64,000 nucleotides of DNA from Blastocladiella emersonii ATCC 22665 (lineage: Eukaryota > Fungi > Blastocladiomycota), in assembly GCA_025594325.1 (NCBI GenBank), contig JANHCV010000004.1, positions 186,001 through 250,000 on the forward strand, read 5' to 3'. The notes under the pieces were generated by a model. The model was not told the origin of the DNA, did no database searches, and worked only from the letters and a program-made list of their open reading frames with translations. Positions 1,056-35,219 of this stretch are shown here, piece by piece (the first letter of the stretch is position 1; the number at the start of each line of letters is the position of its first letter). A program made the position numbers and the translations under genes.

Positions 1056-4000
1056 ATGGCCAGCGACCATCCTCCCTCCACCGGCCCTCCGCGCGCCTCC
1101 GATCCGCTCCTCGGCCCCGCTGCCGCTCCCGCCGCTGCGACGACCTCTGACGTCGGCGCCCTCCTCCCCGGCAGTACCCAGCAGTACTCGCCCGTCTCTA
1201 CCCGCGATCCCGACGTGGTCCCCGTCCCCGCGAACCCGTCGCCGCCCTCGTCCCTCCCCAACCACACCTCCACCGCCAACACGGCCGCTGCCCAACCCGC
1301 TGATACCAAGAACGACGTCCCGCTCGAGCCCATCATGGCCGCTGCTGACGACACGACCAAGGTCGACTCCGCCGCCAAGGACGCACCCGCTGCCGCGCCG
1401 CCCGCCAACGTGCTTCCGTTCGGCCAGCTGTTCAAGTACGCCGACGGGACTGACAAGCTGCTGATGCTTGTCGGCCTCATTGGCGCCGCGGGCTACGGCG
1501 TGCTGACCCCGATTCTGTCCGTGATCCTCGGCGACATTGTGCAGCCGTTCCTCGTGTACGAGGGCGTGCGCGCGACGCCCGGCCTGCCGCCCGCCGTCGT
1601 GGCCGCGGCGCTCGACACGCTGCGCAAGCGCGTCATCGACCAGGTCATCTTCTTTGTCGCCGTCGGCCTCGGCACCATGGTCGCCGCCTACCTGATGCAG
1701 GCCATGTGGATGTGGGCCGGCGAGCGCCAGGCCCGCCGCGTCCGCACAAAGTTCATCAACGCCGTCATGGCCCAGGACCTCGCCTGGTTCGACTCCCACA
1801 AGGCCGGCGACCTCACCACCCAGCTCACCTCCGACACGCTCATGTACCAGGAGGGCATCTCCGAGAAGGCCTCGCAGGCGTTTGCCTACACGATCCAGTT
1901 CATCTCGGGCTTCGCCATCGCCTTCACCCAGTCGTGGCGCCTCACCCTCGTCCTGATCGCGACGCTGCCCGCCTTCGGCATCTCGGGCATCGTCGTCGGC
2001 AAGGCCTTTGCCGCGGGCGCCAGCCGCTCGCAGGAGGCCTACGCCGCCGCGGGCGCCGTTGCCCAGGAGGCCCTCGCCAACATCCGCACCGTCGCCGCGT
2101 TCGGCGGCCAGGACCGCGCCTTCCGCAAGTACTCGAAGCTGCTCGCCGGCACCGTCAAGGAGGGCGAGAAGAAGGCGTGGATCTCGGGCGCCGGGTTCGG
2201 CGTCTTTTTCGGCCTGCTGTACCTGCTGTTCGGCATCGGTTTCTGGTACGGCTCGACCCTCGCCGTGAGCGGCGAGGTTGGCGGCGGCGACGTTCTGGTA
2301 CTTGCCCTCTCTCACTCGCATCACCTATCGGACTGCAACTGACGCGCGCACCCCTCTCGATTCCGCTCCCGCACCACGTAGAAATGCCTGTTCGCCATCA
2401 CCACGGGCGCCTTCTCGATCATCAACCTGTCGCCGTCGTTCCAGGCCATGTCCAAGGCGCGCGGCGCCGGGTACCGCCTGTTCGAGGTCGCCGAGAGCAA
2501 GCCGACCATTGTCGACGGCGCCGTGACCCCGGCCAAGCTCGACGGCAGCGTCGAGTTCCGCGACGTGCGCTTCGCGTACCCGTCGCGCCCCGACGTCGAG
2601 GTGCTCAAGGGCATCAGTTTCACGGCCCAGGCCGGCACCACGGTCGCGCTGGTCGGTGCCTCGGGCTCGGCCAAGTCGACCTGCATCCAGCTCATGGAGC
2701 GGTACTACGAGGCGCTCTCGGGCACCATCTTCATCGACTCGACCCCGATCAACGACCTGCCGCTCAAGTGGCTGCGGCAGAACGTCGGTCTGGTCAGCCA
2801 GGAGCCCATTCTGGTACGCTTGTCTCGACTTGGACTTGGCGATGCTTTCGTGAAGCGGATACTGACCGACGCTCGTCGTACCACATGTAGTTTGACACGA
2901 CCATTGCCGAGAACATTGCGTACGGTGCGCCCGACGGGCTCGTGGTGACGCAGGAGCTGCTCGAGCAGGTGTGCCGCGACGCCAACGCGCACGACTTCAT
3001 CTCCAAGCTGCCCAACGGGTACCAGACCATGGTCGGCGAGCGCGGCAGCCTGCTGTCGGGCGGCCAGAAGCAGCGCATCGCGATCGGTACGCTCTCTCGA
3101 CCGTGTCCGCGTCTGACTGGTCCGACCACCAGCGCGACTCACCCCCGCGACCCCCGCGACCCCCGCGACCGCGTAGCCCGCGCCCTGATCGGTGCACCCC
3201 GTATATTACTGCTGGACGAGGCGACTTCGGCGCTCGACTCGGCGTCCGAGGGTATTGTCCAGGCCGCGCTCGATAAGGCGTCGCAGGGCCGCACGACCAT
3301 CGTGATTGCGCACCGGTACGTTTCCCGGCGCGTTTTTGGGCCGCCGCGACCCGACTAACCACGTCTTCTCCCTGCCCGCGCGTAGCCTCTCGACCATTCG
3401 CGACGCCGACGTCATCCTCGTGTTCGAAAAGGGCCAGATCATCGAGCGCGGCAACCACAACTCGCTGCTCCAGCGCGGCGGCGTGTACGCCGGCCTCGTC
3501 AAGGCGCAGGAGCTCAAGACCCGCAAGACGGCGTCCACGGCCGATATCACCACGGCCGCCGATGCCGAGTCCGAGTCGGACGATTCGGACGACGACGGTG
3601 CCGAGGAGGAGGAGGAGCAGCAGGCCGCCATCACCGCCGCCGCCGCCTCCGAGTCCAAGAAGGCCACGTCCAAGGACGCCCTCGCCTCCACCACCACCAC
3701 CACCAAGCCCGCCCTCGACGAGTTCGAAAAGGCCGAGCGCGAAAAGGCCGAGCTCAAGAAGCTGCTCAAGGAGCGGTCCGTGTCGCTGTGGCGCGTCGTC
3801 AAGCTGCAGGGCGAGGAGTGGCCGTTCCTGGCCGTCGGCGTGCTCATGGGCTCGGTCGCCGGCGCCTTCCTCCCCGCGTTCGGCATCATCCTCGCCGAGG
3901 TGCTGTCGGTCTTCGCGATCCAGGACAAGGACGAGCTCACGCGCAAGGCGCTCGTGTGGACGTGGGTGTTCATTGGGCTCACGGTCGGCAACTTCTTCAT

Positions 4001-5755
4001 CTCGCTGTTCCAGTTTGGGTGCTTTGGGATCGCCGGCGAGCGGCTCACGCGCCGCATCCGCGAGACGGCGTTCCGCGCCATGCTGCGCCAGGAGACGGGC
4101 TGGTTCGACGACGAGAAGCACGGCACGGGCACCCTCACAGCGCAGCTGTCCGAGCAGGCCGACCGGATCCAGAACCTCACGGGCCCGAACGCCGCCAACC
4201 TGATCCAGCTCGTCGTGTCCATGGGCTGCGGCGTCGCGCTCGCCTTCTACTACTCGTGGCAGATGACGCTGACCGTCCTCGCCGCCGTGCCGTTCCTCGC
4301 CCTCGGGTCGTACCTCGAGGCCGCCGTGACGACGGGCGCCGTTGGCAAGAGCCGGCTCGCGTACGGGGCGGCCGCGCAGCGCGCGTGCGACGCGATCCAG
4401 AACATTGCGACGGTCAAGTCGCTGGCGCGCGAGCGCGACTTTGCCGACGGGTACCTCGAGAACATCAAGGCGCCGTACCGCATCGGCGTCCGCAAGGCGC
4501 TCATCGGGTCGTGGGGGTTCGGGTACTCGCAGGCCGTGCAGTTCCTGCTGTACGCCGTGTGCTTCGGCGTCGGGTACCTGTTCGTCCGCGACGGCGTCAT
4601 CACCTCGGCCGACCTGTTCCGCGTCATCTTCGTGCTGCTGTTCGCGTCCATCTCGTTTGCGCAGGCGGCGACCTTCACGGGCAACGCGCAGAAGGCCAAG
4701 GCCGCGGCCATTGCGTACTTTGACCTCGTCGACCGCGTGCCGCCGATCGACATCGACAGCACCGAGGGCGCGCGGCTCGTCGACGTGGCGGGCGCCGTCG
4801 AGGTCGCGGGTGCCGAGTTTGCGTACCCGACGCGCCCCGACGCGCCGATCCTCCGCGGCATCGACTTTTCGCAGCTCGCCGGCAAATCACTTGCCCTGTG
4901 TGGCCCCTCGGGTTCGGGGAAGAGCTCCGTGCTCGCGCTGCTGCAGCGGCTCTACGACGTGTCGGCGGGCAACGTCAAGCTCGACGGGACCGACGTGCGG
5001 CAGTGGCACCTGCAGTCGATGCGCGAGCACCTGGCCGTGGTGTCGCAGGAGCCGTCGCTGTTCATTGGCACGCTGCGCGAGGCCATCGAGTACGGCGTGC
5101 CCGACGGCAAGCCCGTGACCATGGACATGGTCGTCGCCGCGGCCAAGGCGGCCAACATCCACGACTTTATCGAGGGCCTCCCCGAAAAGTACGAGACGCT
5201 CGTCACCTCGTCGCAGCTGTCGGGCGGGCAGAAGCAGCGCGTGGCCATTGCGCGCGCCCTGATCCGGCCGAACCGTACGTTTTCTTGTCGCGCGTCACGG
5301 CTGACCGACCGACCGACCGACCCTCCCGACTCACTCGCGTGCCCCCTCCCCCTCCCTCTCCCTCTCCCTCTCCCCCTTGCACCCGCTCGCACCCGCTTGC
5401 ACCCAGTTGCCTGTCTACTGCTGGACGAGGCGACTTCGGCGCTCGACTCGGCGTCTGAAGTTATCGTCCAGGACACGCTCGACAAGGCGTCGCAGGGCCG
5501 CACGACCATCACGATCGCGCACCGGTACGTTCCTTTTCCTTGGTTGCGCGAACGAGAACACCACCAACTCCTGACCTGACCGACCGACTCTCGCGCCGAC
5601 CTGTATGTAGTCTGTCGACGATCCAGCGCGTCGACCTCATCCTGGTCGTCAAGGACGGCCGCGTGGTCGAGCAGGGCACGCACTTTGAGCTGCTCGACAA
5701 GAAGGGTCTCTACGCCAAGCTGGTCAAGCGCCAGAATCTCGGCAAGACGGTGTGA
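1056..5755 (+). CDS. ABCB1: Full-length ABCB (MDR/P-glycoprotein-like) transporter, TMD-NBD-TMD-NBD, 7 exons, about 1386 aa
   Basis: ccgccATG at 1056. Exons 1056-2297, 2382-2813, 2891-3086, 3177-3315, 3386-5274, 5407-5524 and 5611-5755 are joined by GT-AG introns and sum to 4161 nt in one frame. Motifs: [14 protein letters not shown]-terminus, two LSGGQKQR signatures, two [11 protein letters not shown] Walker B/D-loops, Walker A GASGSAKS (NBD1) and GPSGSGKS (NBD2). Confidence 0.95.
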
Positions 5756-6081
5756 TCCGGATCCTTGGGATTTCACCGCCAAATTTACTAGCCTCGTATA
5801 CAAAACTCGTGTTTCCTCCTCGTTCTCCCTTGTCCGAGTTGGCAGATGAGCCGAAATTCAGCTCCTTTGCCGCGTTCGCTTGCCTGAACTAACTGAACTA
5901 ACCGATGGCACGAGCCCGTTCATCGCACGAAATCATTCCAGTAACTGACGATATGAACGTGTTGATCGGTCCCATCATCACCATATCCTCGCCGGCGTGC
6001 CTCACGATGGCCTCTTCATCGCTTGCTTTGCAATCGCTGCCAGCCCCGTCTTTTGCGGTGTGCTGACCCTACTAGTCATGA

Positions 6082-6329
6082 GCATCACCAAGCCGCGCCG
6101 GACCCGCCAAGTCGATCCAGAGTCGATCGACTTGTTCTCGTTCGAGATGGCCGAGAAAATCGATCCACGCGTCGAATGAGTATTGATCAGCGTGAGCTCA
6201 AGTCATTCGACCTGTTGGTCGACTTGCTTGTCATTCGACCTACGGACATGATTGATCGATCAAGTTAAAAGCTCGAACGACTCATCGAACGAGTGTGGAT
6301 CGAGATATGCCCCGCGCCGATTGATAAAA
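6082..6329 (+). repeat. Left copy of an older, diverged ~250-bp inverted repeat (partner 9194-9416; mirror copies 30405-30652 and 27318-27540)
   Basis: Collinear inverted anchors: 6082-6099 vs 9399-9416 (17/18), 6272-6293 vs 9218-9238 (CTCGAACGACTCATCGAACGAG vs CTCGAACAACT-ATCGAACGAG) and 6317-6329 vs 9194-9206 (13/13). Both segments are TCGA/GATC-rich. Confidence 0.75.
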
Positions 6330-6465
6330 TGCCGATCTGTCCCAGCAGAATGTCAGACAAGTGGTCGAGCGGCGCGAGACGTGCCTCAAAGGACGTCTCC
6401 ACTCGCGCCGATTGAGTTCCAGCTAATTTGCAGCTCCGAATCCACTGATGAGAATGAGCTATCCG

Positions 6466-6952
6466 TTAAGTAGCGCATCGACTTTGCACTGTATCGCCAT
6501 GCTCAGGCTCGTGCGCTTCCAGCGCGTTGCCAATCGTCGGGTTCGCGCCTTCGGGATCGCGGCGGTCCATTGAGTCAAGAAAGTTGGAGATCTGCGGCAT
6601 CGTGAGCAGCGTGAGGCTCGCGTCGTCGTCGTACACGGCGATGAGGTACTCGGTGTACCCGCCCTAGTGCGCCAACGAGGGGCGGTTCCCGTTCGGCGCG
6701 ACAGGAAGGAAGGCCGAGATGGCCAACGGCGGCACAATGTGGATGGAACTCACACGTGGCGGGCTGCGTGGGACGGAGAGGAAACGTCTGCACGACGTAG
6801 AGGCCCGGCGGAACGACGTGCGGCACCGACTGGTACAGGTGGAAATGCTCAACGACCGTGCTTTCGAGCTGCATGCCGTCCAACTCCAGGTTGACGAGCC
6901 AGGTGCGCGTTTCCGCTCGACCAAGCGCGACGGAGGGCAACAACGCGAGCAA
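6466..6952 (-). pseudogene. Small spliced hypothetical gene or pseudogene (mirror copy 29782-30268 +)
   Basis: Coding-like blocks TWLVNLELDGMQLESTVVEHFHLY and GGYTEYLIAVYDDDASLTLLTMPQ are separated by a GTGAGT...TAG intron (6753-6664), but the splice phase does not join the two best frames. Confidence 0.35.
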
Positions 6953-7782
6953 AACACCTTACTTGCGACTCATAAAGCTTCAAGATGTGAGAGCCCTCAC
7001 GACCGCCGTGACGACCTTCTCCACGCGAGAGGAGCGCCGCGGCGCGGCTTGCTTGCCAGCAGGTCTGTATCGACCAAATTCCAGAGCTCACGGCGCAGCC
7101 ACATGCTTGCAGGAAGTAATTCATGGATCAGTCATAGGTGCGACGCCGCGGTGCTGCCGCCGGGAGGAGGGAGCGCCGCTGCTGCGAAGGGAGGAGCGAA
7201 ACGCGTCGAAGCAAACGTCACGGGAGCGCGTCGATCGTTTCGGGACTTTGCTCGCGGCGGCTCGCGCTCCCTCGCCCCATCACCACCAACCATGCCATCG
7301 ACCCGCTCGATACCCGCGACCTCGTGCAACCGCCTGCACCACCACCCCTCGACCTCCATGTAACTCATGTCGACGCGCATCCGCCCGACGCCGCCACGGG
7401 CCCGCGCCGCTTGGTGACTTCCACAGTATGCGTCTCTTGCCTTCTCCTCCCCCGCGACGTGTATCTGCAGTCATGCCTCGAGTCCGCCGACACGCCCTGC
7501 ACGCGTCGACGGGACTCGCGCCCGCTGCGCTCAATGTCCACGCCGCGTTCCCACGCCTTTCGCGCCGGCTGTCCGTTCGCTCACTGACGCACTCACCTTA
7601 CGACCGCTTTGCCCTGTTTCTTAGCCTTCGACGAGCACCTCGAGCACCTCAAGCTGCAACGGCTCTCGTGAGGTCCGCGGAGACGCGTCGGCGTTGATCC
7701 TGAACAAGGTCGCGACAAGGTACGTGGTGTGCAACTCGGTCTACCTCTCCTGTGGACCGAGACTAACACGTTCGCGGCCGCC

Positions 7783-9160
7783 ATGAGTAGGGCACCTAGT
7801 ACGCCAAGCAGCGGCAAGTGGGCTGACCCTCACCTGCGGCGTCAACTCGCGCACAACGCGCCCAAGCCCGCGAGGTACGGTCCTTCTCCTTCGCGCTCTC
7901 GGCGCGATTCGCGCTGCGTGCGGGCACCGCCGAGCTTCGAGTTCTCGAGCGGTCTCGCTCGTGTTGTCCGTCGGTGCAGGTCTTGGCGACGTGGCTCGCG
8001 TGCTCGCGTCGATTGGACTCTTCGCCTGACTTTTTGCTCGCTTGTCTCCGCCACGTCGCCCATAGCCTCGGTCAACGACAACAAAACTCAACTACGATCA
8101 AGAACACGCTGCGAGGTCTCGCTGCTCGGGTCGTCGCTGGCCTCAAGCACGCGCTCGGCTGCGCGTGCGAGTTCCAGTTCGAGGCATGCGACTCGGTCGG
8201 CGTCCTCGCGGACCAACACTGACACGGCCGGCTCGAGTAGGTCATCAAGTACACCACGCTGCAGCGGCAAGGTCCGCCTCGTCGTCCGCCCTTGCGGCAC
8301 GCCCGAGGTCATGCGGTACGGGCTCCATCCCTCTTGTACTCGTCGTGATTAATCGCCTGGCACATCGGCGCTGTCCGGTTCTTCCGCACGCGAGCTAGCT
8401 GGTGCGCTCGGGTTCTGTCTGACCTGGTGCCTGCTGACACGACCCGCTCGCCCAACACCTTCTTGATCATCGCTCACTCGTCGCCGCCACGTCACCCATA
8501 GGCTCGATCTACCACGGCAAGCTGCTGCGGCGCTCGCCCACCGACCGGTCGGCGCTGCCCTCAAGCCCGCACTCGGCCGCGTACTCGTTCATGGTCAAGG
8601 TCTGCAACCCGGTCCGACCTTCCCGTATCCCGACTCCTGGTTGACCGTTACGCATTCGCAGTAGCTGAACAAGCCAGGCTCCTGCTGCACTCGCTGTCGA
8701 GTCGGGTTGCGTTCACGGCCGGGTCGAGAACTCGGACTCACGCTGATGTACGAGATCAACTCGGTCCCCGCGCGTCCCCACCACCTGCTGCTCGAGTACC
8801 TCCTCAAGTCAACCAGCTGCACCGCGCGCCGCTGCCCTCGCCGACCGCCTTCAAGGTCCACCTGCTCGAGTCGGCCGTCGAGCAGCTCAAGTCCATCAAC
8901 AACGCGAGCAGTCAAGAAGCAGGACTGACGGCGACCGCGGCCAAGGCGACGGGGCTCGCGGCGTGTGTCACGGACAACCGCCTGCGCGCCGACGCGTCGC
9001 TCGTCGCACGGGCGGGTCGCCGACCACGCTGCGGCCCGCTTCGTCGGCTCTTCCTGTCCTTCCCACCCATCCAGCATGTGCTACTGCGCATATATATACC
9101 AAATGGCATCTCATTCGGTGCGTCACTCAAGGTCCAGACCGAGTCTTTCGAGTAATCGTT
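7783..9160 (+). pseudogene. Degenerate multi-intron gene remnant, product unknown (mirror copy in the right arm)
   Basis: gccgccATG at 7783, several GTACGG/GTCTGC...AG introns (e.g. 7875-7979), and coding-biased blocks interrupted by in-frame stops and frame changes. Confidence 0.4.
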
Positions 9161-9193
9161 TGACGCTTGCAGCGGACCCGATCAACATGTTAC

Positions 9194-9416
9194 TTTTATC
9201 AATCGGGCGGGAAAGATCTCGTTCGATAGTTGTTCGAGTGGTCACACGACGCGTCGTTCAAGTGCACGTGCAAACTGGATCGACGCATCAGGCCAGATCA
9301 ATCGGAAACGTAACATATCGGGTCGACGTCGATCGACTTGCACTGGGTCCGACCCATTCAAAGGGTGGATCGATGGTCGATCGATTTTGTTTGACTGGGG
9401 CGCGGTTTGGTGATGC
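9194..9416 (-). repeat. Right copy of the older diverged inverted repeat (partner 6082-6329)
   Basis: See the anchors listed for 6082-6329. Confidence 0.75.
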
Positions 9417-9892
9417 GATCAAGTCAGCGATCACGCCAAGGATGCTGTCCAACGAGTCCGATTCCGTGTATGAGAAGCTTATATGATTTGAGCGACAGCA
9501 ACAACGAGTGTCCTTTCGCGCAAGATAAGGCGAGTGTGATTTGGAGCCGCTCGATTGTTACGACGCGCATGTAGCCGCGAAAGTTTGCGCTGCTCGTTCA
9601 TGAGCTTACCAGCGGGCGGGTGCGGCGCGGGTGCAGAGAAAGCAACGCTCGTGCTCATAACCAGTTCAAGTACACGTGACCGCGTTGCGCCACAGTCACC
9701 GGACGCGTGCGACCCCGCCTGCGTCACGCGTGTCACGCGCACTGCGCCGATCTCCTTTGTCATCGCCGCGGACCGCCTCACCTCACCGAGCGACGCGTCG
9801 GCCCGCTCACATCGGGCGACGCGCCCCCGCATCCCCTCTCTCTCTTGTTTCTTTGACCAGTTGCTAGTATTAGCCACCATACAGCCTGTTGT

Positions 9893-9967
9893 CCTCTCGT
9901 GAACCTCCTCACCGTCTCCTCTCGTGAACATCTTCACCGTCTCCGCTTGTGAACCTCTTCACCACCT
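9893..9967. repeat. 25-bp tandem repeat, 3 degenerate copies (mirror 26767-26841)
   Basis: cctctcgtgaacctcctcaccgtct / cctctcgtgaacatcttcaccgtct / ccgcttgtgaacctcttcaccacct. Confidence 0.9.
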
Positions 9968-10158
9968 CGATCTTCATCTCCGCCAAGATCGCACGTCCAT
10001 CGTGCCAAGCTTCCTCCCAGTCGAGTACGCTTCAACTTAACCTCATATCGTCGTGTCAAGCACGAGTTTTTTGACGGAATTCGGCGGATGAAATACCGTC
10101 ACGCAAAGACAGGGTTACCCTGAATGAAACTTGTCGTGGCCATCGTCATTCGTGTATA

Positions 10159-10690
10159 TTGGAGCAAGGATACGTTTTCGAGGCCATGGTCATTGTGGTC
10201 GAGGCCGCCATTGGCTGGAACATGTACGTCCAAGCCGACGACGCAGTGCTTCACGTACCCGCGTGGCCGCCGCAAATTTCGCTGGCGGAGAACCTCGCGC
10301 GCCTCAAGGACTCCATTGGGAAATGGGGGGTCACCACGCAGCGGTGGGTCACGATGATCTTACTAGATCACTGTGATCTACGAGCATCTTAGCCCTGTGG
10401 ATATCTAGCCCCACTCAACCTGTCTGGAGTGAACATGCTAGCGACGATTGGCTGCCAACCTGCCGCTCCAGAACCTTGAGCAGGTGACTGACATGCGCCG
10501 TATCGCGATGCTCGCGTGCCGTCACGGCGTTGTCAGGGTTCCTAAGGCGACCATGGCCACCAAGTTCCTCAAGCTCCTCAAGTATCTGAAGCGCATGTCC
10601 GCGCCAAATCCTCTCCCTGTTCCCGACATTGTTGATTTACCTCGTTCCCCAGTTCGGCCGCCGCGACGACCAAGCATCCCGTCCAAATAG
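10159..10690 (+). CDS. Short two-exon hypothetical protein or remnant (mirror 26044-26575 -)
   Basis: Coding-biased blocks EQGYVFEAMVIVVEAAIGW...KWGVTTQR and NLEQVTDMRRIAML...IPSK* flank a GTGGGT...CAG intron-like segment. No start or family was recognised. Confidence 0.3.
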
Positions 10691-11771
10691 AATGACGACG
10701 CTCTGCCCGTCGGGAGAATAGCTCCAAACGGCGGCACGCGCACTCGTCCTCTGCCGGACCGCGCGACCCTGCTCGCCCACTGAAATCATCGTCTACACTG
10801 CACAGTCAGCAATACGTGCAAGTGTTCGGTTGACCGAGGCATGATGTCCGTGTTCTCGCTTGCAAACTTCCACAATTCTGGCACTTGCCCCAAGTGCTTC
10901 AAAATATTGACGTGTCGAGGAGGCAATGATATCACGCGCCAGCATCATCGCCTACGACTTCCAATTCGGGCGCAGCAGCGATAAGCGCACGCACCAGTAC
11001 TTCGTAGAATCGAAGCGCAACAAGGTGCGACGGGTGGAAAGCTGACGACGGCCTGGCGCGGGGCTCCACAGCAACGAGTCGTCGCCCGCTCAACTCAGCT
11101 CGACCCGCGCTGGCTGCACTAGAGTCCGTGCGGGACAAGAGCGGCACTCACTGTTCGCATGGCCTGAACGAGATAAATGCAATGCATGTAGTTGCATGGG
11201 GGCGTTTTCCATGATTCACCGTGCTACCTAGGGTGGAGTTTTGGTCAAGTCGCGCGCGCGAGCTGAGCTGGGCGGCGCCGCCGCCACTCGCTCGCTCGCT
11301 TCTCACATCAACGTGACGTCCCTGCCACTCCAATCGCGACGCGTCGAGACGCGTGCGGTGCGTCTCGGCCTCGCCAGTCGCGCTCGAAAAGAAAGTACAG
11401 GTGATCGTTCCCACTCGAGTTCAATTCAAAAATAAAAGCAAACAAAAAGCAGCAACAATTCTGGCGGGGGCGAAAACGTGTTGGCAGGACCGAAAAAAAG
11501 GAGCACAGCGAGGGAAAAAGGAGAACCGGCACCACCGCTGCGGTCAGGGCTGTCGGGGCGAGCCTACCAGATTCGAACTTTGCGCCAGCAGGACTCAACA
11601 CTCCCCGACCAGATTCACGCATTAAACGGCAGTTTGGGACCTCCTTGACGACCTCACTCCGTCGCCACGTTGTGACTGCACTTGACCTCGGCCAAATCAA
11701 CGACTCCCAAACTAGACTGGGCATCGTACATCGCCGAAACGGCTCCCAGCCATTGGTCCTTTGCACATCGG

Positions 11772-11962
11772 TTGGCGCAAACCCTTGCGCGAACCCCCCT
11801 TGCGCGATCCGTTGCGCGAACCCCCCTTGCGCGATCCGTTGCGCGAACCCCCCTTGCGCGACCCGTTGCGCGAGGGTTTGCGCAAAGGGGCCAATGTTGG
11901 GCACCATCGAGACCCCATGTATGCGCAAACCAGGGCCTCGGTTCGCGCAAACGTTGGCGCAA
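11772..11962. repeat. TTGCGCGA motif array: 27-bp unit x ~3.3 plus inverted and palindromic copies
   Basis: TTGCGCGA at 11785, 11800, 11812, 11827, 11839, 11854 and 11866 (alternating 15/12 spacing), palindrome TTTGCGCAAA at 11877, inverted TTCGCGCAA at 11942, GTTGGCGCAA at 11771 and 11953. Confidence 0.95.
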
Positions 11963-12068
11963 GAGGTCGCGCCTGGTTCGCGCCGCCGGACGCGCTGCGC
12001 CTCAATATAGAATCACGTGCTCACCCTGAGAGGCATTCCGATAGACCGATTCGAATAATAGCTCTGTA

Positions 12069-12967: not shown

Positions 12968-13160
12968 AATGAAGTTGTGTCACGCGCGCGTTTGGCACGT
13001 GCGCTGTGACGTCTTGGATTGTTGAGCCGCCGCTCGCTCGCACTCTGTTCCCGCTCCCTGCTGTTTAACCACATACATCCTTGTTCGCTAGTCATTGTGT
13101 ATTCGGCCCTCCCTGGGCGCTCTGTTACACTTCGAACAGCCTACCCGGTTGGCTCTCACC

Positions 13161-13502
13161 ATGAGCTACTTGAACAAGGCCGCTCAACAGATCGTTGGCG
13201 ACTGCCCCGTGCTTGCAGACCTCACGCCCGCGCACGTCGAGTTCATGCAGCAGTCGCTCGTGCAGAAGAACCTCAACCCCGTCCAGGCCGTGTGCATCCT
13301 GGCGATGCAGGTTGGCAACCTCAAGTCAGAGCTGCAGCAGCAGCAGGCGACTGTCGTTGAGACGGCGGCGCAGTACAATCAGATCCAGCAACAACTCGCG
13401 GTGACGCAGCAGCAGGCGCAGGCGGCTGAGAAGGCTTGCACCAAGGCGGTGCCTGGGCGCTCTGTTACAATTTGCCTTGTCTGTCAACACCAACGACCTT
13501 GA
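13161..13502 (+). CDS. Coiled-coil hypothetical protein (ORF-A), probably 3'-truncated; paralogue of ORF-B at 13863
   Basis: ctcaccATG at 13161. Q-rich heptads; the segment NLNPVQAVCILAMQVGNLKSELQQQQATVV aligns with NMNPMERLAALDNYCVQLKGALDHQQGELV of ORF-B. Confidence 0.55.
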   Translation: MSYLNKAAQQIVGDCPVLADLTPAHVEFMQQSLVQKNLNPVQAVCILAMQVGNLKSELQQQQATVVETAAQYNQIQQQLAVTQQQAQAAEKACTKAVPGRSVTICLVCQHQRP

Positions 13503-24830: not shown

Positions 24831-25009
24831 ACCTCGTGCGTGAGCGCTACACTTGTGTCAAGTGCGATCGCATCGCAATCCAAACCAGCTTTTGCTCTTC
24901 CATTTGCGTGTGAAAGCGTGATGAAAGCGTCCGTCGCGACGGTCGCGCGCTACGGCGGGAATCCGCGCAACAACAAACACAACCCCATGGCATCGCCTCG
25001 GACGTTAAA

Positions 25010-28000
25010 ATGCCCAGTCTAGTTTGGGAGTCGTTGATTTGGCCGAGGTCAAGTGCAGTCACAACGTGGCGACGGAGTGGGGTCGTCAAGGAGGTCCCAA
25101 ACTGCCGTTTAATGCGTGAATCTGGTCGGGGAGTGTTGAGTCCTGCTGGCGCAAAGTTCGAATCTGGTAGGCTCGCCCCGACAGCCCTGACCGCAGCGGT
25201 GGTGCCGGTTCTCCTTTTTCCCTCGCTGTGCTCCTTTTTTTCGGTCCTGCCAACACGTTTTCGCCCCCGCCAGAATTGTTGCTGCTTTTTGTTTGCTTTT
25301 ATTTTTGAATTGAACTCGAGTGGGAACGATCACCTGTACTTTCTTTTCGAGCGCGACTGGCGAGGCCGAGACGCACCGCACGCGTCTCGACGCGTCGCGA
25401 TTGGAGTGGCAGGGACGTCACGTTGATGTGAGAAGCGAGCGAGCGAGTGGCGGCGGCGCCGCCCAGCTCAGCTCGCGCGCGCGACTTGACCAAAACTCCA
25501 CCCTAGGTAGCACGGTGAATCATGGAAAACGCTCCCATGCAACTACATGCATTGCATTTATCTCGTTCAGGCCATGCGAACAGTGAGTGCCGCTCTTGTC
25601 CCGCACGGACTCTAGTGCAGCCAGCGCGGGTCGAGCTGAGTTGAGCGGGCGACGACTCGTTGCTGTGGAGCCCCGCGCCAGGCCGTCGTCAGCTTTCCAC
25701 CCGTCGCACCTTGTTGCGCTTCGATTCTACGAAGTACTGGTGCGTGCGCTTATCGCTGCTGCGCCCGAATTGGAAGTCGTAGGCGATGATGCTGGCGCGT
25801 GATATCATTGCCTCCTCGACACGTCAATATTTTGAAGCACTTGGGGCAAGTGCCAGAATTGTGGAAGTTTGCAAGCGAGAACACGGACATCATGCCTCGG
25901 TCAACCGAACACTTGCACGTATTGCTGACTGTGCAGTGTAGACGATGATTTCAGTGGGCGAGCAGGGTCGCGCGGTCCGGCAGAGGACGAGTGCGCGTGC
26001 CGCCGTTTGGAGCTATTCTCCCGACGGGCAGAGCGTCGTCATTCTATTTGGACGGGATGCTTGGTCGTCGCGGCGGCCGAACTGGGGAACGAGGTAAATC
26101 AACAATGTCGGGAACAGGGAGAGGATTTGGCGCGGACATGCGCTTCAGATACTTGAGGAGCTTGAGGAACTTGGTGGCCATGGTCGCCTTAGGAACCCTG
26201 ACAACGCCGTGACGGCACGCGAGCATCGCGATACGGCGCATGTCAGTCACCTGCTCAAGGTTCTGGAGCGGCAGGTTGGCAGCCAATCGTCGCTAGCATG
26301 TTCACTCCAGACAGGTTGAGTGGGGCTAGATATCCACAGGGCTAAGATGCTCGTAGATCACAGTGATCTAGTAAGATCATCGTGACCCACCGCTGCGTGG
26401 TGACCCCCCATTTCCCAATGGAGTCCTTGAGGCGCGCGAGGTTCTCCGCCAGCGAAATTTGCGGCGGCCACGCGGGTACGTGAAGCACTGCGTCGTCGGC
26501 TTGGACGTACATGTTCCAGCCAATGGCGGCCTCGACCACAATGACCATGGCCTCGAAAACGTATCCTTGCTCCAATATACACGAATGACGATGGCCACGA
26601 CAAGTTTCATTCAGGGTAACCCTGTCTTTGCGTGACGGTATTTCATCCGCCGAATTCCGTCAAAAAACTCGTGCTTGACACGACGATATGAGGTTAAGTT
26701 GAAGCGTACTCGACTGGGAGGAAGCTTGGCACGATGGACGTGCGATCTTGGCGGAGATGAAGATCGAGGTGGTGAAGAGGTTCACAAGCGGAGACGGTGA
26801 AGATGTTCACGAGAGGAGACGGTGAGGAGGTTCACGAGAGGACAACAGGCTGTATGGTGGCTAATACTAGCAACTGGTCAAAGAAACAAGAGAGAGAGGG
26901 GATGCGGGGGCGCGTCGCCCGATGTGAGCGGGCCGACGCGTCGCTCGGTGAGGTGAGGCGGTCCGCGGCGATGACAAAGGAGATCGGCGCAGTGCGCGTG
27001 ACACGCGTGACGCAGGCGGGGTCGCACGCGTCCGGTGACTGTGGCGCAACGCGGTCACGTGTACTTGAACTGGTTATGAGCACGAGCGTTGCTTTCTCTG
27101 CACCCGCGCCGCACCCGCCCGCTGGTAAGCTCATGAACGAGCAGCGCAAACTTTCGCGGCTACATGCGCGTCGTAACAATCGAGCGGCTCCAAATCACAC
27201 TCGCCTTATCTTGCGCGAAAGGACACTCGTTGTTGCTGTCGCTCAAATCATATAAGCTTCTCATACACGGAATCGGACTCGTTGGACAGCATCCTTGGCG
27301 TGATCGCTGACTTGATCGCATCACCAAACCGCGCCCCAGTCAAACAAAATCGATCGACCATCGATCCACCCTTTGAATGGGTCGGACCCAGTGCAAGTCG
27401 ATCGACGTCGACCCGATATGTTACGTTTCCGATTGATCTGGCCTGATGCGTCGATCCAGTTTGCACGTGCACTTGAACGACGCGTCGTGTGACCACTCGA
27501 ACAACTATCGAACGAGATCTTTCCCGCCCGATTGATAAAAGTAACATGTTGATCGGGTCCGCTGCAAGCGTCAAACGATTACTCGAAAGACTCGGTCTGG
27601 ACCTTGAGTGACGCACCGAATGAGATGCCATTTGGTATATATATGCGCAGTAGCACATGCTGGATGGGTGGGAAGGACAGGAAGAGCCGACGAAGCGGGC
27701 CGCAGCGTGGTCGGCGACCCGCCCGTGCGACGAGCGACGCGTCGGCGCGCAGGCGGTTGTCCGTGACACACGCCGCGAGCCCCGTCGCCTTGGCCGCGGT
27801 CGCCGTCAGTCCTGCTTCTTGACTGCTCGCGTTGTTGATGGACTTGAGCTGCTCGACGGCCGACTCGAGCAGGTGGACCTTGAAGGCGGTCGGCGAGGGC
27901 AGCGGCGCGCGGTGCAGCTGGTTGACTTGAGGAGGTACTCGAGCAGCAGGTGGTGGGGACGCGCGGGGACCGAGTTGATCTCGTACATCAGCGTGAGTCC

Positions 28001-31000
28001 GAGTTCTCGACCCGGCCGTGAACGCAACCCGACTCGACAGCGAGTGCAGCAGGAGCCTGGCTTGTTCAGCTACTGCGAATGCGTAACGGTCAACCAGGAG
28101 TCGGGATACGGGAAGGTCGGACCGGGTTGCAGACCTTGACCATGAACGAGTACGCGGCCGAGTGCGGGCTTGAGGGCAGCGCCGACCGGTCGGTGGGCGA
28201 GCGCCGCAGCAGCTTGCCGTGGTAGATCGAGCCTATGGGTGACGTGGCGGCGACGAGTGAGCGATGATCAAGAAGGTGTTGGGCGAGCGGGTCGTGTCAG
28301 CAGGCACCAGGTCAGACAGAACCCGAGCGCACCAGCTAGCTCGCGTGCGGAAGAACCGGACAGCGCCGATGTGCCAGGCGATTAATCACGACGAGTACAA
28401 GAGGGATGGAGCCCGTACCGCATGACCTCGGGCGTGCCGCAAGGGCGGACGACGAGGCGGACCTTGCCGCTGCAGCGTGGTGTACTTGATGACCTACTCG
28501 AGCCGGCCGTGTCAGTGTTGGTCCGCGAGGACGCCGACCGAGTCGCATGCCTCGAACTGGAACTCGCACGCGCAGCCGAGCGCGTGCTTGAGGCCAGCGA
28601 CGACCCGAGCAGCGAGACCTCGCAGCGTGTTCTTGATCGTAGTTGAGTTTTGTTGTCGTTGACCGAGGCTATGGGCGACGTGGCGGAGACAAGCGAGCAA
28701 AAAGTCAGGCGAAGAGTCCAATCGACGCGAGCACGCGAGCCACGTCGCCAAGACCTGCACCGACGGACAACACGAGCGAGACCGCTCGAGAACTCGAAGC
28801 TCGGCGGTGCCCGCACGCAGCGCGAATCGCGCCGAGAGCGCGAAGGAGAAGGACCGTACCTCGCGGGCTTGGGCGCGTTGTGCGCGAGTTGACGCCGCAG
28901 GTGAGGGTCAGCCCACTTGCCGCTGCTTGGCGTACTAGGTGCCCTACTCATGGCGGCCGCGAACGTGTTAGTCTCGGTCCACAGGAGAGGTAGACCGAGT
29001 TGCACACCACGTACCTTGTCGCGACCTTGTTCAGGATCAACGCCGACGCGTCTCCGCGGACCTCACGAGAGCCGTTGCAGCTTGAGGTGCTCGAGGTGCT
29101 CGTCGAAGGCTAAGAAACAGGGCAAAGCGGTCGTAAGGTGAGTGCGTCAGTGAGCGAACGGACAGCCGGCGCGAAAGGCGTGGGAACGCGGCGTGGACAT
29201 TGAGCGCAGCGGGCGCGAGTCCCGTCGACGCGTGCAGGGCGTGTCGGCGGACTCGAGGCATGACTGCAGATACACGTCGCGGGGGAGGAGAAGGCAAGAG
29301 ACGCATACTGTGGAAGTCACCAAGCGGCGCGGGCCCGTGGCGGCGTCGGGCGGATGCGCGTCGACATGAGTTACATGGAGGTCGAGGGGTGGTGGTGCAG
29401 GCGGTTGCACGAGGTCGCGGGTATCGAGCGGGTCGATGGCATGGTTGGTGGTGATGGGGCGAGGGAGCGCGAGCCGCCGCGAGCAAAGTCCCGAAACGAT
29501 CGACGCGCTCCCGTGACGTTTGCTTCGACGCGTTTCGCTCCTCCCTTCGCAGCAGCGGCGCTCCCTCCTCCCGGCGGCAGCACCGCGGCGTCGCACCTAT
29601 GACTGATCCATGAATTACTTCCTGCAAGCATGTGGCTGCGCCGTGAGCTCTGGAATTTGGTCGATACAGACCTGCTGGCAAGCAAGCCGCGCCGCGGCGC
29701 TCCTCTCGCGTGGAGAAGGTCGTCACGGCGGTCGTGAGGGCTCTCACATCTTGAAGCTTTATGAGTCGCAAGTAAGGTGTTTTGCTCGCGTTGTTGCCCT
29801 CCGTCGCGCTTGGTCGAGCGGAAACGCGCACCTGGCTCGTCAACCTGGAGTTGGACGGCATGCAGCTCGAAAGCACGGTCGTTGAGCATTTCCACCTGTA
29901 CCAGTCGGTGCCGCACGTCGTTCCGCCGGGCCTCTACGTCGTGCAGACGTTTCCTCTCCGTCCCACGCAGCCCGCCACGTGTGAGTTCCATCCACATTGT
30001 GCCGCCGTTGGCCATCTCGGCCTTCCTTCCTGTCGCGCCGAACGGGAACCGCCCCTCGTTGGCGCACTAGGGCGGGTACACCGAGTACCTCATCGCCGTG
30101 TACGACGACGACGCGAGCCTCACGCTGCTCACGATGCCGCAGATCTCCAACTTTCTTGACTCAATGGACCGCCGCGATCCCGAAGGCGCGAACCCGACGA
30201 TTGGCAACGCGCTGGAAGCGCACGAGCCTGAGCATGGCGATACAGTGCAAAGTCGATGCGCTACTTAACGGATAGCTCATTCTCATCAGTGGATTCGGAG
30301 CTGCAAATTAGCTGGAACTCAATCGGCGCGAGTGGAGACGTCCTTTGAGGCACGTCTCGCGCCGCTCGACCACTTGTCTGACATTCTGCTGGGACAGATC
30401 GGCATTTTATCAATCGGCGCGGGGCATATCTCGATCCACACTCGTTCGATGAGTCGTTCGAGCTTTTAACTTGATCGATCAATCATGTCCGTAGGTCGAA
30501 TGACAAGCAAGTCGACCAACAGGTCGAATGACTTGAGCTCACGCTGATCAATACTCATTCGACGCGTGGATCGATTTTCTCGGCCATCTCGAACGAGAAC
30601 AAGTCGATCGACTCTGGATCGACTTGGCGGGTCCGGCGCGGCTTGGTGATGCTCATGACTAGTAGGGTCAGCACACCGCAAAAGACGGGGCTGGCAGCGA
30701 TTGCAAAGCAAGCGATGAAGAGGCCATCGTGAGGCACGCCGGCGAGGATATGGTGATGATGGGACCGATCAACACGTTCATATCGTCAGTTACTGGAATG
30801 ATTTCGTGCGATGAACGGGCTCGTGCCATCGGTTAGTTCAGTTAGTTCAGGCAAGCGAACGCGGCAAAGGAGCTGAATTTCGGCTCATCTGCCAACTCGG
30901 ACAAGGGAGAACGAGGAGGAAACACGAGTTTTGTATACGAGGCTAGTAAATTTGGCGGTGAAATCCCAAGGATCCGGATCACACCGTCTTGCCGAGATTC

Positions 31001-34000
31001 TGGCGCTTGACCAGCTTGGCGTAGAGACCCTTCTTGTCGAGCAGCTCAAAGTGCGTGCCCTGCTCGACCACGCGGCCGTCCTTGACGACCAGGATGAGGT
31101 CGACGCGCTGGATCGTCGACAGACTACATACAGGTCGGCGCGAGAGTCGGTCGGTCAGGTCAGGAGTTGGTGGTGTTCTCGTTCGCGCAACCAAGGAAAA
31201 GGAACGTACCGGTGCGCGATCGTGATGGTCGTGCGGCCCTGCGACGCCTTGTCGAGCGTGTCCTGGACGATAACTTCAGACGCCGAGTCGAGCGCCGAAG
31301 TCGCCTCGTCCAGCAGTAGACAGGCAACTGGGTGCAAGCGGGTGCGAGCGGGTGCAAGGGGGAGAGGGAGAGGGAGAGGGAGGGGGAGGGGGCACGCGAG
31401 TGAGTCGGGAGGGTCGGTCGGTCGGTCGGTCAGCCGTGACGCGCGACAAGAAAACGTACGGTTCGGCCGGATCAGGGCGCGCGCAATGGCCACGCGCTGC
31501 TTCTGCCCGCCCGACAGCTGCGACGAGGTGACGAGCGTCTCGTACTTTTCGGGGAGGCCCTCGATAAAGTCGTGGATGTTGGCCGCCTTGGCCGCGGCGA
31601 CGACCATGTCCATGGTCACGGGCTTGCCGTCGGGCACGCCGTACTCGATGGCCTCGCGCAGCGTGCCAATGAACAGCGACGGCTCCTGCGACACCACGGC
31701 CAGGTGCTCGCGCATCGACTGCAGGTGCCACTGCCGCACGTCGGTCCCGTCGAGCTTGACGTTGCCCGCCGACACGTCGTAGAGCCGCTGCAGCAGCGCG
31801 AGCACGGAGCTCTTCCCCGAACCCGAGGGGCCACACAGGGCAAGTGATTTGCCGGCGAGCTGCGAAAAGTCGATGCCGCGGAGGATCGGCGCGTCGGGGC
31901 GCGTCGGGTACGCAAACTCGGCACCCGCGACCTCGACGGCGCCCGCCACGTCGACGAGCCGCGCGCCCTCGGTGCTGTCGATGTCGATCGGCGGCACGCG
32001 GTCGACGAGGTCAAAGTACGCAATGGCCGCGGCCTTGGCCTTCTGCGCGTTGCCCGTGAAGGTCGCCGCCTGCGCAAACGAGATGGACGCGAACAGCAGC
32101 ACGAAGATGACGCGGAACAGGTCGGCCGAGGTGATGACGCCGTCGCGGACGAACAGGTACCCGACGCCGAAGCACACGGCGTACAGCAGGAACTGCACGG
32201 CCTGCGAGTACCCGAACCCCCACGACCCGATGAGCGCCTTGCGGACGCCGATGCGGTACGGCGCCTTGATGTTCTCGAGGTACCCGTCGGCAAAGTCGCG
32301 CTCGCGCGCCAGCGACTTGACCGTCGCAATGTTCTGGATCGCGTCGCACGCGCGCTGCGCGGCCGCCCCGTACGCGAGCCGGCTCTTGCCAACGGCGCCC
32401 GTCGTCACGGCGGCCTCGAGGTACGACCCGAGGGCGAGGAACGGCACGGCGGCGAGGACGGTCAGCGTCATCTGCCACGAGTAGTAGAAGGCGAGCGCGA
32501 CGCCGCAGCCCATGGACACGACGAGCTGGATCAGGTTGGCGGCGTTCGGGCCCGTGAGGTTCTGGATCCGGTCGGCCTGCTCGGACAGCTGCGCTGTGAG
32601 GGTGCCCGTGCCGTGCTTCTCGTCGTCGAACCAGCCCGTCTCCTGGCGCAGCATGGCGCGGAACGCCGTCTCGCGGATGCGGCGCGTGAGCCGCTCGCCG
32701 GCGATCCCAAAGCACCCAAACTGGAACAGCGAGATGAAGAAGTTGCCGACCGTGAGCCCAATGAACACCCACGTCCACACGAGCGCCTTGCGCGTGAGCT
32801 CGTCCTTGTCCTGGATCGCGAAGACCGACAGCACCTCGGCGAGGATGATGCCGAACGCGGGGAGGAAGGCGCCGGCGACCGAGCCCATGAGCACGCCGAC
32901 GGCCAGGAACGGCCACTCCTCGCCCTGCAGCTTGACGACGCGCCACAGCGACACGGACCGCTCCTTGAGCAGCTTCTTGAGCTCGGCCTTTTCGCGCTCG
33001 GCCTTTTCGAACTCGTCGAGGGCGGGCTTGGTGGTGGTGGTGGTGGAGGCGAGGGCGTCCTTGGACGTGGCCTTCTTGGACTCGGAGGCGGCGGCGGCGG
33101 TGATGGCGGCCTGCTGCTCCTCCTCCTCCTCGGCACCGTCGTCGTCCGAATCGTCCGACTCGGACTCGGCATCGGCGGCCGTGGTGATATCGGCCGTGGA
33201 CGCCGTCTTGCGGGTCTTGAGCTCCTGCGCCTTGACGAGGCCGGCGTACACGCCGCCGCGCTGGAGCAGCGAGTTGTGGTTGCCGCGCTCGATGATCTGG
33301 CCCTTTTCGAACACGAGGATGACGTCGGCGTCGCGAATGGTCGAGAGGCTACGCGCGGGCAGGGAGAAGACGTGGTTAGTCGGGTCGCGGCGGCCCAAAA
33401 ACGCGCCGGGAAACGTACCGGTGCGCAATCACGATGGTCGTGCGGCCCTGCGACGCCTTATCGAGCGCGGCCTGGACAATACCCTCGGACGCCGAGTCGA
33501 GCGCCGAAGTCGCCTCGTCCAGCAGTAATATACGGGGTGCACCGATCAGGGCGCGGGCTACGCGGTCGCGGGGGTCGCGGGGGTCGCGGGGGTGAGTCGC
33601 GCTGGTGGTCGGACCAGTCAGACGCGGACACGGTCGAGAGAGCGTACCGATCGCGATGCGCTGCTTCTGGCCGCCCGACAGCAGGCTGCCGCGCTCGCCG
33701 ACCATGGTCTGGTACCCGTTGGGCAGCTTGGAGATGAAGTCGTGCGCGTTGGCGTCGCGGCACACCTGCTCGAGCAGCTCCTGCGTCACCACGAGCCCGT
33801 CGGGCGCACCGTACGCAATGTTCTCGGCAATGGTCGTGTCAAACTACATGTGGTACGACGAGCGTCGGTCAGTATCCGCTTCACGAAAGCATCGCCAAGT
33901 CCAAGTCGAGACAAGCGTACCAGAATGGGCTCCTGGCTGACCAGACCGACGTTCTGCCGCAGCCACTTGAGCGGCAGGTCGTTGATCGGGGTCGAGTCGA

Positions 34001-35219
34001 TGAAGATGGTGCCCGAGAGCGCCTCGTAGTACCGCTCCATGAGCTGGATGCAGGTCGACTTGGCCGAGCCCGAGGCACCGACCAGCGCGACCGTGGTGCC
34101 GGCCTGGGCCGTGAAACTGATGCCCTTGAGCACCTCGACGTCGGGGCGCGACGGGTACGCGAAGCGCACGTCGCGGAACTCGACGCTGCCGTCGAGCTTG
34201 GCCGGGGTCACGGCGCCGTCGACAATGGTCGGCTTGCTCTCGGCGACCTCGAACAGGCGGTACCCGGCGCCGCGCGCCTTGGACATGGCCTGGAACGACG
34301 GCGACAGGTTGATGATCGAGAAGGCGCCCGTGGTGATGGCGAACAGGCATTTCTACGTGGTGCGGGAGCGGAATCGAGAGGGGTGCGCGCGTCAGTTGCA
34401 GTCCGATAGGTGATGCGAGTGAGAGAGGGCAAGTACCAGAACGTCGCCGCCGCCAACCTCGCCGCTCACGGCGAGGGTCGAGCCGTACCAGAAACCGATG
34501 CCGAACAGCAGGTACAGCAGGCCGAAAAAGACGCCGAACCCGGCGCCCGAGATCCACGCCTTCTTCTCGCCCTCCTTGACGGTGCCGGCGAGCAGCTTCG
34601 AGTACTTGCGGAAGGCGCGGTCCTGGCCGCCGAACGCGGCGACGGTGCGGATGTTGGCGAGGGCCTCCTGGGCAACGGCGCCCGCGGCGGCGTAGGCCTC
34701 CTGCGAGCGGCTGGCGCCCGCGGCAAAGGCCTTGCCGACGACGATGCCCGAGATGCCGAAGGCGGGCAGCGTCGCGATCAGGACGAGGGTGAGGCGCCAC
34801 GACTGGGTGAAGGCGATGGCGAAGCCCGAGATGAACTGGATCGTGTAGGCAAACGCCTGCGAGGCCTTCTCGGAGATGCCCTCCTGGTACATGAGCGTGT
34901 CGGAGGTGAGCTGGGTGGTGAGGTCGCCGGCCTTGTGGGAGTCGAACCAGGCGAGGTCCTGGGCCATGACGGCGTTGATGAACTTTGTGCGGACGCGGCG
35001 GGCCTGGCGCTCGCCGGCCCACATCCACATGGCCTGCATCAGGTAGGCGGCGACCATGGTGCCGAGGCCGACGGCGACAAAGAAGATGACCTGGTCGATG
35101 ACGCGCTTGCGCAGCGTGTCGAGCGCCGCGGCCACGACGGCGGGCGGCAGGCCGGGCGTCGCGCGCACGCCCTCGTACACGAGGAACGGCTGCACAATGT
35201 CGCCGAGGATCACGGACAG
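25010..35219 (-). repeat. Right arm of the 10,210-bp inverted duplication
   Basis: Reverse complement of 1515-11724. Substitutions were seen only at 25533 (vs 11201) and 25080 (vs 11654). Confidence 0.97.
30979..35219 (-). pseudogene. 5'-truncated duplicate of the ABCB gene (lacks codons 1-153); may be rescued as a chimeric gene by splicing from an upstream exon at 35920-35291
   Basis: Mirror of 1515-5755 with the same introns. It begins at codon 154 (LSVILGD), directly preceded on the minus strand by GCTGAC...TTCCCCTTCCCCCAG. Confidence 0.85.

Follow-up and report, generated by a model that had tools for sequence, protein, structure and literature searches.

A 33.7-kb palindrome with a P-glycoprotein-type transporter gene and its 5'-truncated copy in Blastocladiella emersonii

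We analysed a 64,000-nt stretch of DNA from Blastocladiella emersonii ATCC 22665 (assembly GCA_025594325.1, contig JANHCV010000004.1, record positions 186001–250000), here called the window, with positions counted from its first letter. The window contains a 33.7-kb palindrome, which is a genuine chromosomal structure. Its left end lies inside a gene for a transporter of the ABCB type, and a 5'-truncated copy of that gene lies in the right arm. With moderate confidence, we favour an origin as an inverted segmental duplication in which the left copy is parental and the right copy is the by-product of a one-off replication or repair error, and not an origin by transposition or by recombination between pre-existing repeats.

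A repeat finder, a base-by-base comparison and self-BLAST all gave one long inverted repeat in the window, 1515–11724 against 25010–35219. No second long repeat was found in the 64 kb by self-BLAST. An earlier note on this DNA had described the arms as reverse complements with a coordinate sum of 36734, two substitutions and no net indel. The full arm alignment and self-BLAST agree with this exactly. Each arm is 10,210 nt long, the coordinate sum is constant, there are no indels and the identity is 99.98%. The two mismatches are both transitions, one between 11201 (G) and 25533 and the other between 11654 (T) and 25080. They lie 524 and 71 nt, respectively, from the inner boundary, and the outer 9.7 kb of the arm is free of mismatches. 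Two randomly placed mismatches would both fall within 524 nt of the inner edge with a chance of about 0.3%.

The spacer between the arms is single-copy and 13,285 nt long, and its two ends are dissimilar to each other. Just outside all four boundaries, the in-register identity drops at once to 15–30%, which is the random level. Searches with blastn (word 11), tblastx, tblastn with the 70 N-terminal residues and Smith-Waterman alignment against shuffles detected no residual homology past the arms, and local alignments of the flanks scored no higher than shuffled sequence. The coordinates of the palindrome and of the features in and around it are collected in Table 1.

Table 1. Positions of the palindrome, its genes and neighbouring features in the 64-kb window (".", no strand assigned).
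Feature	Position	Strand	Description
Left arm (parental)	1515–11724	+	Codons 154–1386 of ABCB with 6 introns, then about 6 kb of lower-GC DNA without sign of coding
Right arm (derived)	25010–35219	-	Reverse complement of the left arm, 2 transitions
Spacer	11725–25009	.	Unidentified DNA, CACTA-type element, CpG-depleted Copia remnant
Arm-to-arm differences	11201–11654	.	Only two; partners 25533 and 25080
Full-length ABCB, H9P43_003805	1056–5755	+	1386 amino acids, 7 exons; palindrome boundary between codons 153 and 154, in exon 1
5'-truncated ABCB copy, H9P43_003810	30979–35219	-	Annotated as 1252 amino acids and up to 35421, with a non-homologous predicted N-terminus of 19 residues
Structure-prone array	11775–11966	.	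27-nt units containing TTGCGCGA and an inverted partner; 51 nt into the spacer from the left inner junction
CACTA/En-Spm-type transposase open reading frames	15370–17348	-	Transposase_21 (E = 7e-12), faint DUF4218; host-like third-position GC and codon usage
Copia-type pol remnant	21154–23354	+	Gag-pre-integrase, integrase SH3 and first half of RVT_2; split over several frames
Intron-like string, 71 nt	35220–35290	-	Starts with GTGCGC; two CTGAC, C/T tract, CAG; ends exactly at the arm boundary

The published assembly was built by the La Jolla Assembler from PacBio HiFi reads with a mean length of 10.5 kb, and GAIIx data served for polishing (PMC9730499). The main text of that paper contains no word beginning with "palindrom" or "inverted". 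Four sequencing runs of ATCC 22665 contain the stretch, all as Logan 31-mer contigs, and depth was obtained from three of them (X1, X2 and X3). The Logan contigs were placed on 32270–38169, which is half arm and half right flank; the arm depth covers 32270–35219 only and does not bear on the copy number of the inner 0.5 kb. The earlier note had pointed to read depth and, among the junctions, to 35219/35220 as places where an artefact would become visible. At both places the reads speak for the palindrome. The depth of the arm is not equal to that of the right flank but about double in each of the three libraries. In X1, the word depth was 289–299 in the arm and 132 in the right flank (ratio 2.2). 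In X2, the values were 44.5–47.3 and 25 (ratio 1.9), with a dip in the very GC-rich 35.2–36.4 kb. In X3, they were about 7 and 3–3.9 (ratio about 2); a loose end in this run is presumably a 454 adaptor.

The X1 arm contig ends at 35219, where the graph forks and two contigs overlap its last 30 letters. One of these is a 36.3-kb contig that runs into the right flank at a depth of 132. The other is a 714-nt contig with a depth of 141, and its length and orientation are as expected of the left flank. The two depths are about equal and together account for the arm depth of 289. An overlap of 30 letters in a 31-mer graph means that the junction 31-mer is present in the reads, though it is one letter short of the bridging criterion. 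In X2, a contig begins at 35190, crosses the junction and continues into the right flank. No variant bubbles were seen in X1 and X2 over 2.95 kb of arm. The reported totals are 6.37 Gb of HiFi and 2.2 Gb of Illumina sequence for a genome of 34.3 Mb (PMC9730499). From these we estimate a genome mean of about 177–190x for HiFi and about 25–35x, in 31-mers, for Illumina. By that estimate, the arm is well above the genome mean in both HiFi and Illumina data, and the flank is at or below it.

Because the arm depth is above the estimated genome mean and is twice that of the flank, a head-to-head join of two haplotypes is excluded. The twofold depth and the equal fork at 35219 also make a foldback chimera very unlikely, so that an assembly or library artefact of either kind has only a very small probability. 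What can be said for it is that all runs come from one strain, that X1 is probably the same data as was used for the assembly, and that palindromes in some former assemblies of asexual animals were later questioned. These points are outweighed by the agreement of three libraries, apparently of different technologies (PMC9730499), by the balanced branches and the lack of bubbles described above, and by the asymmetric 13.3-kb spacer and the two fixed differences, which are unlike a hairpin chimera. Depth and assembly both give two copies of the arm, and each ABCB protein is encoded on one contig only.

Some differences from the assembly were seen in X3 only, at full depth: an additional G at 33587, C>T at 34570 and A>G at 34982. 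In the ABCB frame, the two substitutions correspond to G370D and F233L. They could be sequencing errors, a stock difference or variants of one arm. The Logan 31-mer contigs of X1, probably the HiFi run, total 28.7 Mb, compared with 34.27 Mb for the assembly. This difference is compatible with several Mb of near-identical duplicated sequence, and many other causes are possible.

The gene copy in the right arm, H9P43_003810, was the top match of the protein search, and H9P43_003805, the left gene, was added by cluster look-up; both lie on JANHCV010000004.1. An exact exon map of the left gene gave six introns of 70–135 nt, with donors GTAC(G/T), branch sites CTGAC or CTAAC and acceptors YAG. The predicted protein has two halves, each with a transmembrane domain followed by a nucleotide-binding domain (NBD). 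Pfam ABC_membrane and ABC_tran were found twice each, and Walker A, Walker B and LSGGQ motifs are present in both halves. Solved P-glycoprotein/ABCB1 and ABCB4 chains were matched with E = 0. H9P43_003805 is therefore a full transporter of the P-glycoprotein type; drug efflux is predicted, and the names given to it in relatives are automatic annotation.

The Walker A motif of NBD1 reads GASGSAKS (window 2571–2594, codons 506–513, and the mirror site in the right arm). It has Ala in place of the third Gly, a residue conserved in each of the eight other ABCB1-like orthologues checked in Blastocladiomycota and chytrids. The Walker A motif of NBD2 is the canonical GPSGSGKS. The first ATP site of this ABCB is possibly degenerate.

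The outer boundary of the palindrome cuts into exon 1 of ABCB, and the arm runs 6 kb past the 3' end of the gene. The left gene is unbroken across the boundary (...GYGVLTPI/LSVILGD..., with the boundary at the slash) and aligns residue for residue with the orthologues of Catenaria, Allomyces and Paraphysoderma. Upstream of it lies an ECH_1/ECH_2 gene, whose orthologue (about 70% amino acid identity) adjoins ABCB in Sorochytrium. Because the conserved exon is continuous and the ECH-ABCB synteny is kept, the left copy is the parental gene in its ancestral place, and the right copy is the derived one. The ECH-ABCB linkage is common to B. emersonii and Sorochytrium milnesiophthora and was not seen in Catenaria, Allomyces or B. 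britannica. In B. emersonii, an oxidase gene of the flavin adenine dinucleotide (FAD) type sits between ECH and ABCB.

For the right copy, tblastn found no homologue of codons 1–153 anywhere in the window. This copy has neither the elbow helix nor about two thirds of the first transmembrane helix (TM1), and it is without the native upstream region and promoter. The start given to the right gene in GenBank was rejected, as it uses a weak donor, reads the intron-like string as codons and gives a product unrelated to the orthologues. The annotated 19-residue N-terminus of H9P43_003810 is ab initio filler.

The arm holds 1233 of the 1386 codons of ABCB, which agrees with the figure of about 89% in the earlier note. 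Its further claim, that the duplication raises the dosage of a multidrug-resistance (MDR)-type pump, is not borne out: the second copy has lost codons 1–153 with the elbow and most of TM1, together with its own promoter. The extra copy is thus incomplete, where functional gene amplification calls for one that is complete and expressed. We consider it improbable that the duplication was selected for higher dosage of the efflux pump. The gene is a bona fide P-glycoprotein-type full transporter gene, and the other full-length ABCB paralogue found likewise forms an inverted pair, in which each copy is complete. Here, however, the second copy lacks 153 codons and has filler as its predicted start, and more than half of each arm is noncoding DNA.

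The remainder of the arm, 5756–11724, was said to carry several small genes, which our results do not support. We found no Pfam match in it. It has a lower GC content, and it does not show the strong third-position GC periodicity of ABCB (0.9–0.97). The annotation is inconsistent between the arms, since one GenBank hypothetical gene in identical sequence was modelled as 225 amino acids (7103–8664) on the left and as 146 amino acids (27579–28951) on the right. Another GenBank model, of 111 amino acids (11654–12724), spans the left inner junction. The hypothetical-gene models in the arms and at this junction appear to be ab initio predictions, unsupported by periodicity or protein families. A sensitive blastn search inside the arms gave only weak direct repeats at 7761–8614 and one 20-nt inverted match. 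The direct repeats lie in the noncoding part and are diverged (68–82% identity, offset about 420–450 nt).

The four junctions were inspected for traces of the mechanism. No microhomology was found at the outer or the inner junctions, or for a hypothetical ancestral adjacency of 25009 and 35220. There is no target-site duplication, as the bases outside 1515 and 35219 share nothing. No transposon terminus, terminal inverted repeat, long terminal repeat (LTR) or shared repeat was found at the four junctions, and no CACTA or LTR terminus at 11724/5, 25009/10 or 35219/20. The description of the palindrome as transposon-seeded is therefore not supported, for no element end lies at any junction; with the element boundaries as initially proposed, recognisable elements begin 1.76 kb inside the spacer on the left and stop about 180 nt inside it on the right.

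The earlier note had also raised the possibility that the whole structure moves together, as a giant composite foldback element in which host genes serve as terminal repeats. Apart from its general outline, with transposon DNA enclosed by long inverted ends, nothing in the palindrome recalls such an element, and the probability of this reading is close to negligible. The left flank and the left arm form one conserved ABCB exon at a syntenic site, there are just two copies of the arm, and the outer ends have no transposon-like termini in addition to the missing target-site duplication. Drosophila foldback (FB) transposons have element-specific tandem subrepeats in their arms, many copies and target-site duplications. 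The palindrome resembles FB transposons and their composites in having long inverted termini around other DNA, but it has none of these three features.

Mobile DNA is indeed present in the spacer, as the earlier note had it, with the open reading frames of the CACTA type and the Copia pieces (Table 1). The nearest Atlas clusters of the former are Transposase_21 families (score 0.97). Between the ends proposed for this CACTA-like element (13488 and 19879), the shared sequence is limited to CAC and, about 35 nt in, an inverted GCAAAAGACGGTCAAA motif, and no 3-bp target duplication was found at them. The observed/expected CpG ratio is 0.38–0.9 over about 19800–24600 and 1.0–1.6 elsewhere, including the CACTA-type transposase and both arms. 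The depletion stops at about 24900, before the right arm. This suggests that the CpG depletion of the Copia remnant is old and stems from element-specific methylation and deamination. We considered whether the right arm might end inwards in a Copia 3' LTR and rejected this, because there is no matching 5' LTR and the depletion ends before the arm. Nothing recognisable was found in the outermost 1.76 kb at the left end of the spacer or in the last 0.18 kb or so at its right end. The spacer is thus mostly old mobile DNA, and no recognisable element touches a junction.

Close to the left inner junction lies the array of 27-nt units. Seven of the nine copies of TTGCGCGA in the window are within 11775–11966. 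As single-stranded DNA, 11725–11990 folds at -75.6 kcal/mol (z = -4.9), compared with z = +0.5 and +0.4 for equal-length control flanks at the right inner and right outer junctions. Quasi-palindromes are known sites of breaks and fork stalling (PMC3855049). The TTGCGCGA array may be a transposon subterminal array, a cluster of binding sites or a fragile site. As a site of breakage or fork stalling it would be a lead only, since it is off the centre of symmetry.

The searches also returned a second inverted ABCB pair. Among the best 120 matches of two protein searches was the other full-length paralogue, H9P43_004455 (1252 amino acids). The same contig carries two copies of it, which face each other head to head at a distance of about 39 kb (record positions about 1.898–1.902 and about 1.941–1.945 Mb). 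Both full-length ABCB genes found in this strain are thus inverted pairs. The second pair shares only 4.2 kb. Over the coding sequence and its three introns, the two copies differ only by one synonymous third-position change, and the 250 nt upstream are about 90% identical. The similarity fades on both sides, and the flanks are otherwise unrelated. By these signs, the second pair is the core of an older inverted duplicate, homogenised by gene conversion.

At the right outer boundary, the string at 35220–35290 resembles the introns of B. emersonii ABCB itself. In Paraphysoderma, Catenaria and Allomyces, the first ABCB intron interrupts the last Gly codon of GYG, 17 nt upstream of the homologous site. 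In B. britannica, it lies 7 nt upstream, which is 10 nt further on. An intron near the boundary site is missing in Sorochytrium, in the left copy of B. emersonii and in the B. emersonii paralogue. The first intron of the ABCB orthologues illustrates how an intron can slide and be lost within a single gene family. For 35220–35260, the only possible source in the window was a chance-level 13-mer without extension. Upstream of the string, an open frame of about 200 codons has no third-position GC periodicity of the coding kind.

We propose the following origin of the palindrome. A 10.2-kb stretch, from ABCB exon 1 to 6 kb past the 3' end of the gene, would have been copied backwards and joined in beyond an adjacent 13-kb patch of old transposon DNA, which would leave the right copy without a promoter and without its first 153 codons. 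A single error, such as a template switch, a fold-back or break-induced copying, sealed by end joining, could have done this. Identical inverted arms of 10 kb that are 13 kb apart are expected to recombine, with conversion and occasional inversion of the spacer. Once formed, the structure would therefore be a passive substrate for arm-to-arm conversion and spacer inversion, and passive flipping of the spacer is plausible. Inverted duplications are known to arise by established routes (PMC10622511, PMC10766186).

Several other mechanisms were considered and set aside. Recombination between long pre-existing repeats does not fit, as there is no flanking homology, and neither does a transposase-mediated rearrangement, as there are no element ends at the junctions. 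Origin-dependent inverted-repeat amplification (ODIRA) in its primary form would give three copies, and there are two. Insertion of a mobile unit is contradicted by the left gene, which is continuous and syntenic.

A number of observations weigh against the origin proposed here. For the inner junctions and for the inverted orientation, the support comes from the published HiFi assembly and from graph topology. Right-flank synteny was found in none of Catenaria, Allomyces, B. britannica and Sorochytrium. Near-identity of the arms is no clock, as copies about 39 kb apart in the second ABCB pair have been homogenised in this same genome. The position of both mismatches at the inner edge also fits a pre-existing priming repeat or an edge effect of conversion. 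Finally, the intron-like string, together with a nearby intron in four relatives, hints that the right copy may predate the loss of an intron from the left copy, in which case the palindrome would be old.

Two alternatives build on these observations. The palindrome might be old and kept alike by conversion, with its breakpoint in a first ABCB intron that was later lost from the left copy and with its outermost edge beyond the reach of conversion. We regard this as possible but not likely. It would account for a string that looks like the 3' end of an intron of this very gene and stops exactly at 35220, and the position of the intron slides in the family, as the distances of 17 and 7 nt given above show. 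Inverted copies elsewhere in the same contig have evidently undergone conversion, the only mismatches are at an arm edge, and the spacer contains an old, CpG-depleted Copia element. On the other hand, the putative acceptor matches neither the position nor the phase of the orthologous introns. No remnant of exon 1 was found upstream of the string, where the open frame lacks the periodicity of coding sequence. The intron is also missing in Sorochytrium, where the ECH-ABCB synteny is kept, and the loss may thus be old. The 6 kb of noncoding arm has no eroded edge. Alternatively, the string could be templated filler at an end-joining scar, with its intron-like look a coincidence; the left copy contains GCTGAC, CCCC and ATTC, the pieces that make up the string, directly upstream of the boundary or across it.

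A fold-back or template switch could also have been primed by an inverted repeat, at least 0.5 kb long, that already flanked the spacer, for example two copies or the two ends of a transposon. The inner arm ends would then be this older repeat and the remainder newly synthesised; this is the form in which the transposon-seeded origin of the earlier note could hold. We consider it rather unlikely. In its favour, both arm differences lie in the inner 524 nt, a strongly folding array is found 51 nt from the left inner junction, the spacer is rich in transposons, and foldbacks primed at natural inverted repeats are known to give rise to inverted duplications (PMC10622511). However, the inner 0.5 kb has no Pfam match, no terminal motif and no further copy in the window. 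The known elements lie off the junctions, the Copia remnant ending before the arm at the CpG shift near 24900, and two mismatches are a thin basis for such a repeat.

Returning to the duplication by a one-off error, its age can be judged from the edges. Because the palindrome has none of the eroded edges seen in the second ABCB pair, a young origin is favoured, and on these sequence features we think that the palindrome is probably young rather than old and copy-corrected. The earlier note had called it a very recent inverted duplication. The inverted duplication is real and, with two differences and sharp edges, looks young; a recent origin is likely but unproven.

A wider possibility is that the B. 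emersonii genome is unusually rich in large inverted duplications, copy-corrected like those of sex chromosomes, that have caught genes of the P-glycoprotein type repeatedly, and that the palindrome is older than its 0.02% divergence suggests. This seems doubtful to us. If it were true, the truncated copy, having retained the end of a lost intron, would be a dated example of concerted evolution outliving intron loss.

Compared with known systems, the locus is a further large palindromic segmental duplication rather than a switch, a mobile element or a proven case of resistance amplification. The spacers of foldback products are short. The foldback rearrangements that follow a double-strand break or fork restart (PMC10622511, PMC3855049) are similar in their junctions, which have no long homology, and in the structure-prone repeat beside one inner junction. 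The foldback products in PMC10622511, however, are hairpin-capped and then dicentric and need a secondary rearrangement, whereas the palindrome described here is interstitial, with a 13.3-kb spacer and both flanks in one contig. Inverted triplications of the ODIRA type (PMC10766186) are similar as an inverted gain of copies thought to come from a replication error. They differ in copy number, which is two here, and the junctions showed no recognisable short interrupted inverted repeats.

The large, near-identical palindromes of sex chromosomes (human and ape Y P1–P8, X palindromes) are kept alike by gene conversion between their arms (Rozen et al. 2003 in PMC5490193; PMC6790999). The palindrome shares with them arms of at least about 10 kb, more than 99.9% identity, a unique spacer, genes in the arms and the potential for conversion and inversion. 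It differs from them in lying on an autosome-like fungal contig, with one truncated gene copy and sharp edges. The long inverted repeats and drug-related copy number variants (CNVs) of Candida albicans (PMC6591007, PMC7371428) are also fungal, with gene-bearing repeats and a link to the amplification of drug genes. In C. albicans, long repeats are reported at the breakpoints of larger CNVs in drug adaptation, whereas here the repeat itself is the duplication, and one copy is incomplete.

B. emersonii has no known sexual cycle. In this respect it resembles Folsomia candida, with 11 palindromes, and Adineta vaga, with 17 (PMC5490193), which also have gene-bearing palindromes; the one described here is 99.98% identical.

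For annotators, H9P43_003810 is better treated as a 5'-truncated duplicate with an invented N-terminus. As a specimen the palindrome is clean: parental and derived copies can be told apart, the four junctions are sharp, and a contrasting ABCB pair lies on the same contig. The wider question is whether inverted duplications arise or persist unusually often in this early-diverging and apparently asexual fungus, and for what reason.

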